Sequence record: NC_027402.1
Length of the DNA: 64,000 nt
Reading direction: 5' to 3' (one strand)
The stretch's first letter is position 1. Every line of letters begins with the position of its first letter. Shown here one piece after another: positions 21,199 to 25,950 of this stretch. The notes under the pieces are model-generated. The model was not told the DNA's origin. It did not search any database and saw only the letters and a program-made list of their open reading frames with translations. The translations under genes and the position numbers were made by a program.

Positions 21199-22236
21199 GT
21201 GAAACAATATCTTGAGATGATGCAGAACATTCTGGACGAGGGTCATGTTAAAGGCGATCGTACTGGAACAGGGACGCTTTCTGTCTTTGGACGCCAGATG
21301 CGTTTTGATTTGCGTAAAGGTTTCCCGTTAGTCACGACTAAGAAACTCCACCTGCGTTCTATTATCCATGAACTGCTGTGGTTCCTTAGTGGGGATACCA
21401 ACACCAAATATCTGGAAGATAACGGCGTTACCATTTGGCGGGAGTGGCAAGATGAAAATGGGAACCTTGGCCCCCTGTATGGTGCACAATGGAGACGTTG
21501 GAAAGATGTGAAACTGGTGCCTAAGAAAAATGCAGCTTTACTCGAGAAACTGCAAGCTGCTGGATACGCGGATTATGGCGACGCGGACGACGGTTCACAA
21601 ATGTTCGATGCGCGTGTACTTCTGAAAGAGCACGACCAGATCTCTAAGGTGATTGACCAGCTGCGTAACGATCCTGACAGTCGCCGTATTATTGTCAGCG
21701 CATGGAACGTGGGTGAGTTGGATCAAATGGCGTTAGCTCCGTGTCATGCGTTCTTTCAGTTCTACACTCGTGAGCTGTCTATCGACGAGCGTCTTGATTG
21801 GTTTGAAAAGAACCTTCCAGATCAATTTAACGATTCCCGCTTTAGTAATGAAGCTGTAGCAGATGACGCAGTGTTCCACGTTGAGATGGACGCACTTGAA
21901 ATACCTCGCCGCATTCTTTCATGTCAGCTCTATCAACGCAGTGCGGATTTTTTCCTCGGCGTGCCGTTCAACATCGCGTCTTACGCATTACTCGTGCACA
22001 TGGTTGCCCAGCAGGTTAACATGGTGCCGGGCGATTTCATTTGGACGGGCGGTGACACACATCTCTACTCTAATCATCTGGAGCAGGCCAAGCTCCAGCT
22101 GACGCGTGAGCCGTTACCTTTACCGAAACTGATCATCAAGCGTAAACCGGAATCTATCTTCGATTATAAATTCGAAGATTTTGAGATCGTTGGGTATCAG
22201 TCTCATGAAAAAATATCTGCACCGGTGGCTATCTAA
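21199..22236 (+). CDS. thyA: thymidylate synthase (with two loop insertions)
   Basis: [61 protein letters not shown] and HLYSNH. True start is GTG 21199 after GGA. Confidence 0.97.
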
Positions 22237-23034: not shown

Positions 23035-23802
23035 ATGATGAAACTCTTTGCGTTCTCCGATGAATTCTACACGGTGGAATTCGACGACTACGAATACGGG
23101 TTATTAGGGGCCGTCGACATGGAGGACGCTAAACGGCAGCTTCCTACTAGCGAAATAGAAATCATTGAGATTGGGGAAACTAATCTTAGTGGGATTTTGA
23201 TGCTGGGGCGGCGACCACGACCTGCGGAACCTGAGCAGGAAAGAGAGCAAGTGCAAGCGATTTGTCTGGTCTATGAGCCGATAGACCCTGCAGCGATAGC
23301 GAAGGTGGTCGATACACTACGGCCACAGATTGGCGTCGCGATTGAAAATTATCGCTGGGCTCGTTTCTCAGGCGACACGCCGATATTTTCGAATAAGCAC
23401 TGGTTGCTGTGTATCAACAACGACACGATAATGGTACCTTTAACAGGGGAGAAGAATTTTGAAGATAACTTCGTCCCTGGCGAAGAGTCTGTTATCTTCG
23501 AGTATACCCATGTCATCGGAAAGCCGAGCTTCTACCAAGTTCTGATTGATGTATTGACTCACGTCGGTCGAACCATCGAATACCACTACTGGGCACGCCA
23601 TGCGCGTTTTAAATGGTTCTCGTTGACGTACGTCGAAGGTTGGGAACGTGTTGTTGAAAAGATTGACGGGCGCTATGAGCAGATTTGGTTCCTGAACCCG
23701 GCATTCCGTGAAGAATTACCCGCATGGGTAAAAGAAGAGGCGAGCAAGCTGACGGTTGGCTTTACTAAGCAGGGCGCGCCGTATATGGTTAACTACAAAT
23801 AA
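23035..23802 (+). CDS. hypothetical protein (255 aa)
   Basis: ATG directly after the previous stop, RBS GGAG. Confidence 0.7.
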   Translation: MMKLFAFSDEFYTVEFDDYEYGLLGAVDMEDAKRQLPTSEIEIIEIGETNLSGILMLGRRPRPAEPEQEREQVQAICLVYEPIDPAAIAKVVDTLRPQIGVAIENYRWARFSGDTPIFSNKHWLLCINNDTIMVPLTGEKNFEDNFVPGEESVIFEYTHVIGKPSFYQVLIDVLTHVGRTIEYHYWARHARFKWFSLTYVEGWERVVEKIDGRYEQIWFLNPAFREELPAWVKEEASKLTVGFTKQGAPYMVNYK

Positions 23803-23813
23803 GGTGAAAACAG

Positions 23814-24293
23814 ATGTCTATAACTCGGATCGATTATCGCGCCGTAGTAAAAGAACTGTCCAAAGGTCTTATCGAACTGGACTCCGATGAAGCCCGTAGC
23901 TGTGGCTTTTTACCGCATATTGCACTGAGCGAGTTCCGCACTATCCGCTATGGCGCTGGTCGTCAGAAAGGCGTTACAACACACGCTGTTGATATGTCAG
24001 CAAAGTTCCACGGCAGCGTTCTGTATCTGGTTCACAATGAAGCGTTACGGAGCGAAGTGGTGGAGAAATTCCATGAAAAAGCCGCTGGGAACGGTTGGCT
24101 GACCGTGCACTGTAACTACTTGCCTGAGGGTTGGAAACGCGCGACGGGTGCTGGTATATCCGGCTACGAGAAATTCGGCTTGGTTATTGTCGATGAAGCG
24201 GGTTTCTTCTTCAACAAGTTCAGTTACGATAAAATCTATCGCAGTCTGGTCGACGTAGTAACGCCAGACGTTGTGATACACCTGATTAATTAA
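23814..24293 (+). CDS. small stand-alone P-loop/terminase-ATPase-like domain, Walker A Lys replaced
   Basis: GAGRQKGVTT (compare RQHGKT of the terminase in this window) and Walker B LVIVDEA; only 159 aa. Confidence 0.55.
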   Translation: MSITRIDYRAVVKELSKGLIELDSDEARSCGFLPHIALSEFRTIRYGAGRQKGVTTHAVDMSAKFHGSVLYLVHNEALRSEVVEKFHEKAAGNGWLTVHCNYLPEGWKRATGAGISGYEKFGLVIVDEAGFFFNKFSYDKIYRSLVDVVTPDVVIHLIN

Positions 24294-24305
24294 GTAGAGG
24301 AAAAT

Positions 24306-24494
24306 ATGGCTGGAGAACTCGGTCGTGGGCAAGCCACAACGTTCATGCATCGTGATGGGTTAGGTGCGGATGTAAACATGTCTCCGGATGACGAGATGGT
24401 TATCCCTGGACTTGACCCTGACGCAGGTGTGGAAGGTGGCGTTGACCCGTCGAAAGACGACGACAACTGCACTGGTGGTGCGTGCAAGATTTAA
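24306..24494 (+). CDS. 62-aa acidic peptide resembling the NrdA C-terminal redox tail
   Basis: RBS AGAGG, terminator immediately after. Ends PSKDDDNCTGGACKI* versus E. coli NrdA PSIQDDGCESGACKI*. Confidence 0.7.
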   Translation: MAGELGRGQATTFMHRDGLGADVNMSPDDEMVIPGLDPDAGVEGGVDPSKDDDNCTGGACKI

Positions 24495-24503
24495 AATACG
24501 TAT

Positions 24504-24539
24504 TAGGGTGTCCATATGGACACCCTACTTATTTTTTTT
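24504..24539 (+). terminator. intrinsic terminator
   Basis: Perfect 24-bp palindrome TAGGGTGTCC-ATAT-GGACACCCTA followed by a T-run. Confidence 0.85.
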
Positions 24540-24557
24540 GTTTAAGGAGCTATCAAA

Positions 24558-25499
24558 ATGGGCGACCGTTTCATTATCCAGATTCCGTATAACGTTATTG
24601 TTGAACCTAACCAGTACCTGGCACAGATTAATGAGCTTCTGGCTGGATTCTGCCAACGTCAGTTTGTTGAACCGTGGTCCTTTGAGAAACTGTACACCCT
24701 GTGCGTGAACAGTGAAACCGGTCACACTTACGTCGAAGGTAAAGTATTCACAGGCGACCAGAGTTTGGAAATAAATGATTTCGAAATGCCGTGGACGTTG
24801 GAAGGTGTCGAGTATCGTGGTACGGTTGATCGTCCACGTTACGTACCTTTGTACACCATCCCACAATGTATTACTAACGTTATGGGTTGGTCTAAAGCGC
24901 GTGGTATTCTGGATAACGGCGTCTGGTATAGCCAAGCCACCAAACTCTACGAAGAAGACGGTGAAGCGGCAACCGGTATCAGTAAAAACAAACGTCGTTA
25001 CATCATGGACGGTATCGGTGATGCTCTGGTCGTGTTGGTTAACTTGATGGAACTCATTAAGTTTGACTCAACCGATATCAGCACATACGTCAACGACGCA
25101 CGTTCAAAGAAACCACACGCCGGGAACAGTCATTACCTGTTCCACAAAATGCGTTTCCATCTTACTTGTGCAGTTGATTATATCTGGGATCAGGCAGGCA
25201 TCGACTCAGCTAAGCAACTCGAATATAAACACTTCGAGAACAGCGACGCGGTAATGATCGAATGTCACTTCGCTCAGATGGTCGAATACGCCAATGCGCT
25301 GGCTATTGCGTACGATATGACTCTGGAACAGTGCTTCTCCTTGGCGTGGGATGAAATCAAAGACCGTAAGGGTTTCCTGAATGCGGACGGTATCTTCGTT
25401 AAAGAAGCAGACATGACTGCTGCTGAAATCGAAGTAAACGGTTCCCTTACTGTAAAAGATGAGGCGTTTACCGATGGCGAAGAAACTGTTCACGGTTGA
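24558..25499 (+). CDS. mazG: MazG-like NTP pyrophosphohydrolase with N-terminal extra domain and internal insertion
   Basis: WSKARGI...QATKLYEEDGE...DGIGDALVVL and AWDEIKDRKG...GIFVKEAD, hallmarks of the phage MazG-like family. Confidence 0.82.
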   Translation: MGDRFIIQIPYNVIVEPNQYLAQINELLAGFCQRQFVEPWSFEKLYTLCVNSETGHTYVEGKVFTGDQSLEINDFEMPWTLEGVEYRGTVDRPRYVPLYTIPQCITNVMGWSKARGILDNGVWYSQATKLYEEDGEAATGISKNKRRYIMDGIGDALVVLVNLMELIKFDSTDISTYVNDARSKKPHAGNSHYLFHKMRFHLTCAVDYIWDQAGIDSAKQLEYKHFENSDAVMIECHFAQMVEYANALAIAYDMTLEQCFSLAWDEIKDRKGFLNADGIFVKEADMTAAEIEVNGSLTVKDEAFTDGEETVHG

Positions 25500-25896: not shown

Positions 25897-25950
25897 AAAT
25901 AAAAGCAAACGAGTACCCCGTTAGGGGTACTCGCATTACTTATTTTTTTG
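25896..25950. terminator. bidirectional intrinsic terminator
   Basis: CGAGTACCCC-GTTA-GGGGTACTCG with A-rich and T-rich flanks, between convergent genes. Confidence 0.85.

Follow-up and report, generated by a model that had tools for sequence, protein, structure and literature searches.

SPN3US_0234 of Salmonella phage SPN3US is, judged from its sequence and that of its relatives, a real and conserved micro-protein, made up of an acidic, probably disordered linker that ends in a copy of the C-terminal redox tail of NrdA, the large subunit of class Ia ribonucleotide reductase. Profile comparison confirmed that this C-terminus is a stand-alone copy of the NrdA tail. The preferred reading of its role, to which a probability of roughly 0.45 is given, is that the free extra tail would be charged by thioredoxin or glutaredoxin and would act on the host NrdA in trans, raising the output of dNTPs. 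Reduction by these host proteins, action on NrdA and activation rather than blockage of the enzyme are all features that we infer for SPN3US_0234. The DNA analysed (hereafter the window, 64,000 nucleotides) is the final 64 kb of the SPN3US genome (240,413 bp, genus Seoulvirus; 100% identity), so that a position in the window equals the position in the SPN3US record minus 176,413. The features discussed are collected in Table 1.

Table 1. Position of the peptide gene, its parts and its neighbours, and of related features at other loci. Positions given without a locus name are those of the window.
Feature	Position	Strand	Basis and remarks
Thymidylate synthase, SPN3US_0229	21220-22236	+	Annotation; opens the co-directional run; kept upstream in relatives
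SPN3US_0232, 255 aa, unknown function	23035-23802	+	Synteny
SPN3US_0233, 159 aa, small P-loop-like protein	23814-24293	+	Syntenic with the peptide gene among the jumbo phages (tblastn)
Ribosome-binding site AGAGG	24296-24300	+	Five bases 5' of the ATG; read from the sequence
Peptide gene, SPN3US_0234	24306-24494	+	Stop codon included; ORF list and annotation
Variable N-terminal region, residues 1-27	24306-24386	+	Unalignable between genera
Second conserved region, residues 28-47	24387-24446	+	Acidic-hydrophobic, then Gly-rich, ending G45 V46 D47
Copy of the NrdA redox tail, residues 48-62	24447-24491	+	Cys55/Cys60; Cys60 third from the end
Putative terminator, hairpin and T-run	24504-24541	+	10 bp, 6 G-C pairs, G+C-rich; consensus scan and sequence
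MazG-like nucleotide pyrophosphohydrolase, SPN3US_0235	24558-25499	+	PHROG 7855, E 4e-145; weak Pfam MazG match
Two-way terminator-like hairpin	25909-25934		10-11 bp, 7 G-C pairs
Neisseria 42-aa tail ORF	L162:3167-3292	+	Has the upstream motif of the phage peptides
Neisseria 42-aa tail ORF	L023:500-625	-	Has the upstream motif of the phage peptides
Neisseria 42-aa tail ORF	L047:7771-7896	-	Has the upstream motif of the phage peptides
45-aa family member beside an Nramp gene	L241:5001-5138	+
SPN3US_0232-like domain fused to tail peptide, 355 aa	L196:79-1146	+
Zinc-ribbon-like protein with NrdA-type tail, 70 aa	L205:458-670	+
NrdD, anaerobic class III reductase	L205:789-2651	+	E 6e-155
Paired radical-SAM genes, SPN3US	L010:40024-42139	-
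Paired radical-SAM genes, CR5	L238:32830-34978	-

The peptide gene starts with ATG and encodes 62 residues according to both the ORF list and the annotation of the record. It is labelled as a hypothetical protein in GenBank (RefSeq tag ACQ60_gp032), and no mention of 'gp234' was found in the SPN3US literature searched. The product is Gly/Asp-rich and of low complexity, with 13 Asp and Glu residues against 4 Lys and Arg, 11 Gly, a single aromatic residue and exactly two cysteines, Cys55 and Cys60. The first-pass annotation had described an acidic 62-residue ORF with an AGAGG ribosome-binding site that closes a run of genes just before a terminator, and both the sequence and the annotation agree with it: SPN3US_0234 is the last gene of a co-directional run, and the first feature on its 3' side is a terminator-like hairpin (stem and loop at 24504-24527) followed by a T-run. 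The PHROG families matched by the protein (38753, 14561 and 24014) are all of unknown function, and neither SPN3US_0234 nor the other family members match any Pfam or NCBIfam model.

The likeness to NrdA was established with a profile in which seven relatives, drawn from five phage genera, were each represented by their C-terminal 32 residues; it was searched against 177,635 PDB sequences. The best matches correspond to residues 747-761 of the 761 residues of E. coli NrdA (E 6e-4), the two ends coinciding, and the top ten are all E. coli NrdA chains. The profile also matches 1qfn_B, a 25-residue peptide of the NrdA C-terminus solved with glutaredoxin 1, as well as two further reductase alpha chains, both at their extreme C-termini. 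As a single-sequence query, SPN3US_0234 gave no match in the PDB. When an Escherichia NrdA taken from a genome locus was compared with the whole of SPN3US by tblastn, the sole match was the tail segment of the peptide gene, with 10 of 15 residues identical. At the DNA level, the pattern D-x-x-C-x-x-G-A-C-K-I-stop has a single occurrence in the window, and 100 shuffled versions of the window contain none. The ORF that ends at this pattern in bacterial genomes holds an NrdA body in 105 of the 120 matches listed, and therefore the pattern is nearly diagnostic of the NrdA tail. Endings in K-I and in K-L both occur on NrdA as well as on stand-alone peptides.

A closer comparison with the E. coli tail (Cys754/Cys759) shows two cysteines separated by four residues at the same distance from the C-terminus and five identical terminal residues. 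Acidic residues precede the motif in both proteins, in a region that is flexible. The Cx4C spacing and the terminal GACKI that had been claimed from the sequence are thus recovered in an alignment with NrdA 747-761 that runs end to end. The other proposed resemblances fared less well: the 'PS' match is in register with NrdA but is replaced in the relatives from Erwinia phages, and the 'RDG' match lies about 20 residues out of register, is missing in relatives and must be attributed to chance. The peptide differs from NrdA in being a separate protein of 62 residues, without catalytic body, ATP cone or Tyr-Tyr dyad, in having an extra conserved motif and in being encoded by a phage without NrdA, NrdB or NrdD. 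The absence of Tyr-Tyr and of an NrdA body had both been noted at first pass. SPN3US_0234 indeed holds no Tyr-Tyr, it matches none of the Pfam domains of the reductase body (ATP cone, ten-stranded barrel), and the NrdA search of the whole genome finds the tail alone.

The gene is present in 82 of 50,697 phage records searched by tblastn. With the exception of a handful of matches at chance level (E of 4 or more), these belong to jumbo phages, whose hosts are Salmonella, Escherichia, Proteus, Cronobacter, Serratia and Erwinia. Thirteen relatives found by similarity, distributed over five jumbo-phage genera, are 48-94 aa long and 40-72% identical. Seven columns of the tail (D52, C55, G58, A59, C60, K61 and I62) and five columns upstream of it (G35, L36, G45, V46 and D47) are invariant in all thirteen, and the N-terminal part cannot be aligned between genera. 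Therefore the Cys pair and the last five residues have been kept while the N-terminus drifts, as the first-pass annotation had suggested could be the case. All synonymous codons occur at the conserved tail positions, which indicates that the DNA has diverged and the protein has not changed. Exactly two cysteines are present in 37 of 42 distinct peptides; for the peptides retrieved with the pattern, invariance is partly a product of the way in which the set was built. A profile search of 1.84 billion representative proteins yielded 26 clusters with an E value no higher than 1e-3, all of them of 39-157 aa and nearly all with a match that reaches the C-terminus; K-L replaces the terminal K-I in a few of them, and Ala59 is Gly in one.

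The acidic-hydrophobic motif placed upstream of the tail is common to all the peptide sub-families and is lacking in NrdA. By this sequence criterion the peptides are a gene family and not nrdA debris. The region (residues 28-47) has no match in the PDB, and a profile built from 20 peptides over their N-terminal parts had a Qnr protein (E 1.4) as its sole match there. The idea that the motif imitates the C-terminal tail of NrdB, or else the acidic tip of single-stranded-DNA-binding protein, was rejected as unsupported, since this profile found neither of them in the PDB. A recent capture from host DNA was also discarded, as the SPN3US_0234 gene has no blastn match in 5,426 E. coli genomes. In several of the SPFM assemblies (LR535901-LR535912; H43-H48, H51) the peptide gene and its neighbours appear split into two or three pieces; in one SPFM record, 1.7 kb is broken into 20 pieces, so that error-rich assemblies and not biology are the likely cause.

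The family is not restricted to jumbo phages, as had been assumed for its carriers, and is also found on viral contigs of about 60 kb and other sizes and in bacterial chromosomes. A scan of IMG/VR with the K-I pattern gave at least 95 matches, among which at least 53 are NrdA (many of them split genes) and at least 40 are stand-alone ORFs that do not exceed 140 aa and lack an NrdA body; the remaining matches listed are one 355-aa fusion (L196) and one ORF truncated where its locus ends. Several sub-families are recognised among the stand-alone viral peptides, many of them from contigs no longer than about 60 kb. With the K-L ending, the pattern retrieved at least 108 NrdA and at least eight stand-alone peptides. 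A separate sub-family with the K-L ending (L271, L277, L282, L283, L297, L326 and L329) consists of stand-alone proteins of about 55 aa, the N-terminal part of which looks helical, unlike that of the K-I peptides. A 685-aa gene directly upstream of one K-L peptide was considered as a tail-less NrdA from which the peptide would have been detached, and was rejected because it has neither NrdA similarity nor a Pfam family.

At least nine credible stand-alone ORFs were found in bacterial chromosomes by the pattern scan, and the genera that carry them also have a tail-bearing NrdA. In Neisseria, a 42-aa ORF with an NrdA-type tail occupies the gap between iscS and iscU in the iron-sulfur assembly operon. 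In Rheinheimera and Alishewanella the stand-alone tail ORF adjoins pyrC. The Alishewanella peptide is flanked by pyrC and an MFS transporter, in the position of yceB-grxB-mdtH of E. coli; it was therefore examined as a positional replacement of glutaredoxin 2, and this was rejected because the transporter, with 23% identity to MdtH over part of its length, is not its orthologue. The search of representative proteins added to these nine a 45-aa family member on a metagenomic, Neisseriaceae-like contig (L241), 48 bp after an Nramp (MntH-like) manganese transporter gene on the same strand and about 2.4 kb upstream of nrdG-nrdD. The Nramp neighbour is a second link of the tail peptides to metal homeostasis.

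Stand-alone tail peptides usually adjoin genes of dNTP metabolism. The thyA/MazG neighbourhood proposed for SPN3US_0234 is supported by annotation and synteny, which place the gene in a thyA-MazG nucleotide cluster. The MazG-like SPN3US_0235 is the next gene on the 3' side, and a MazG-like gene stands beside the peptide in relatives too. In the jumbo-phage group the peptide clusters with thyA, with genes like SPN3US_0230, 0232 and 0233 and with MazG genes, in an order that varies; in CR5, for instance, the 0233 homologue is found 3' of the peptide gene and not 5'. SPN3US_0233 has no Pfam family; it contains Walker-A-like and Walker-B-like motifs, and its AlphaFold2 model (pLDDT 67) gives weak matches to RecA/DEAD-box domain 1 (best E 2e-3, TM about 0.5). 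The model of SPN3US_0232 (pLDDT 42) is unusable. On a 236.9-kb metagenomic jumbo-phage contig, a SPN3US_0232-like domain continues in frame into the tail peptide within a 355-aa ORF (L196), and no 0233-like gene intervenes; only one such contig is seen, and the fusion may be an artefact of assembly.

Other phages present other surroundings. On the contigs of about 60 kb, the peptide is found among an RdgC-like gene, a weak deaminase match, a dNMP kinase and ThyX, and on further contigs it follows a dUTPase, is near ThyX or follows a primase-helicase. In L205, a 70-aa protein with two C-x-x-C pairs (zinc-ribbon-like) and an NrdA-type tail is encoded directly 5' of NrdD. Since these neighbourhoods are distinct in unrelated phages, the peptide is flanked by unrelated dNTP-supply genes in independent lineages. 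Considered as a possible RiPP precursor, the peptide has no maturation enzymes (cyclase, radical SAM, protease or exporter) adjacent to it, its neighbours being thyA, MazG, dNMP kinase, ThyX and dUTPase.

In the complete genomes of SPN3US and CR5 (Derbicusvirus), tblastn with a set of five queries (two NrdA, two NrdB, one NrdD) detected no NrdA, NrdB or NrdD, and the tail alone was matched. Thus, in these two carriers nrdAB is absent, and so is nrdD. Their annotation contains no reductase, thioredoxin or glutaredoxin. The loci of the stand-alone peptides hold no nrdA or nrdB, and there is no nrdA beside the peptide in any of the relatives. Two whole-contig scans found, among the matches listed, no contig with both a tail-bearing NrdA and a stand-alone peptide; the set examined for this exclusion comprises at least 16 peptide-carrying contigs longer than 200 kb. 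NrdA with a matching tail is present in the host orders of the isolates. The related phage phiKZ encodes a reductase, the knock-down of which lowers plaque formation (PMC12571901). No phiKZ-type Pseudomonas phage appears among the matches of the peptide gene in the 50,697 phage records searched by tblastn.

Several known systems resemble the peptide in part. Sml1 of yeast is a small disordered inhibitor of ribonucleotide reductase that competes with the C-terminal domain of the large subunit itself. SPN3US_0234 is like Sml1, Spd1, Hug1 and Dif1 in being small and probably disordered, and by analogy its target would be the large subunit, at the stage when the C-terminal tail regenerates the active site; no sequence relation to these proteins was found in Pfam and PDB searches or among the 26 clusters. 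Sml1 lacks a redox Cys pair and inhibits, whereas the peptide is a copy of the tail itself. Thioredoxin, glutaredoxin and NrdH are also small redox proteins, some of them phage-encoded, that phages carry for dNTP synthesis. These are folded proteins with the thioredoxin fold and a C-x-x-C motif, and the peptide, which has its cysteines four residues apart and no match to the thioredoxin family in Pfam, NCBIfam or the PDB, would be their substrate and not their equivalent. Finally, phage nrdA genes split by introns, inteins or homing-endonuclease genes also give rise to a separate ORF that ends in the tail. The last pieces of these genes are about 160-470 aa long, keep the body and stand beside other nrdA pieces and nrdB, none of which applies to the peptides. 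In IMG/VR, nrdA was found in two to four pieces at L146, L147, L158, L163, L165, L173, L176, L180, L184, L185, L195, L216, L219 and L224, a pattern usually left by introns, inteins or inserted homing-endonuclease genes.

Ribonucleotide reductase determines how much DNA precursor is available. The NrdA tail receives electrons from thioredoxin or glutaredoxin through its two cysteines; it then swings into the active site to re-reduce the disulfide formed there at each turnover. This re-reduction is a slow, limiting part of the reductase cycle. Because the phage has no reductase of its own and requires DNA far above what the host chromosome could supply, it is proposed that many free tails would be made in the host cytoplasm. 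Host reductants would charge these tails, which could then pass electrons to the host NrdA in trans, so that a second route of re-reduction would be active while the oxidised tail of NrdA itself is away recharging. The added route would in turn lead to a higher dNTP output. In this scheme the conserved upstream motif may serve to dock the peptide on its partner. The bacterial copies coexist with tail-bearing NrdA and are found in metal-homeostasis operons, which hints at regulation and not at simple boosting. The wider statement, that phages and some beta- and gamma-proteobacteria encode free electron-shuttle arms with which a reductase-less virus would tune the host enzyme in trans, is put forward a little more tentatively.

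The same data also fit a peptide that blocks the active site or acts as a thioredoxin/glutaredoxin sink. Such a competitive antagonist or decoy would occupy the entrance of the NrdA active site or soak up the reductants, lowering or re-timing the reduction of ribonucleotides in the host, in the manner of Sml1 in yeast; a decoy for thioredoxin or glutaredoxin was also one of the two roles offered by the first-pass annotation. The peptide tail is identical in kind to that of NrdA, the second conserved motif could anchor it on its target, and the bacterial copies, located together with tail-bearing NrdA in stress- or metal-regulated operons, would suit a regulator. This main rival is nevertheless considered unlikely, in view of the absence of NrdA, NrdB and NrdD from SPN3US and CR5: a 240-kb genome could presumably not be built from host DNA alone, and thus a block of the host reductase would leave the phage short of precursors. 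Those phages that have an NrdA of their own could afford the blockage, yet none with the peptide is seen among the matches listed, and both cysteines are invariant although a blocker would need no pair. More doubtful is a role as an adaptor, in which the tail would draw electrons from thioredoxin or glutaredoxin for another phage partner, such as SPN3US_0232, SPN3US_0233 or a further enzyme encoded in the cluster. Throughout the jumbo-phage group, 0232-like and 0233-like genes accompany the peptide, L196 fuses the peptide to a 0232-like domain, and elsewhere the tail is carried by other small domains (the zinc ribbon beside NrdD and a domain of 75 residues). However, the other sub-families and the bacterial copies lack relatives of 0232 and 0233, the structure models of these two uncharacterised proteins are weak or unusable, and the fusion is seen in one metagenomic contig.

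A convergent motif with another role, for instance an acidic metal- or iron-sulfur-binding peptide whose likeness to NrdA would be a coincidence, has a low probability. The location of bacterial copies between iscS and iscU and directly 3' of an Nramp manganese transporter gene would agree with it, as would a very acidic peptide with one Cys pair, but eleven positions match in the C-terminal register, NrdA shows the corresponding K-I and K-L variants, the pattern is near-diagnostic of NrdA (105 of the 120 matches listed) and the phage contexts are those of nucleotide metabolism and not of metal handling. That the gene is a decaying nrdA fragment or a spurious ORF is already contradicted and is highly improbable, even though the peptide covers only the last 15 residues of NrdA and split nrdA genes are common in viral contigs. 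Intact ORFs with their own start are present in five genera at 40-70% identity, the 26 clusters defined at 50% identity are all short, no remnants of an NrdA body flank the gene in any relative and the second conserved motif does not derive from NrdA. Moreover, the pieces of split nrdA genes keep the last helix of the body and the Tyr-Tyr, and the peptides keep neither. The shared upstream motif, the intact starts and the lack of flanking nrdA remnants together rule out gene debris.

The first-pass annotation knew of no described system of this kind, and the stand-alone tail peptide is apparently undescribed: it has no Pfam or NCBIfam family, no paper describing it was found, and literature searches on the motif and on a phage tail peptide returned nothing relevant. 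If the action on host NrdA in trans is correct, the gene would be the first example of an auxiliary gene encoding a moving part of a host enzyme in detached form, and its product the first protein-level modulator of the regeneration of bacterial class Ia ribonucleotide reductase. The tail gene would then represent a new external control on ribonucleotide reductase and would explain how large phages without a reductase obtain sufficient dNTPs. Being unannotated, of 40-90 residues and present in several phage lineages and in some bacteria, the family shows that a conserved micro-protein may go unnoticed in standard annotation or be recorded there as 'hypothetical'.

Two further observations were made in these genomes. 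A pair of adjacent radical-SAM genes is kept in both SPN3US and CR5; in SPN3US the pair lies about 60 kb from the peptide gene, outside the window. Downstream of the MazG-like gene, the two-way terminator-like hairpin listed in Table 1 is placed between the convergent genes SPN3US_0236 and SPN3US_0237.
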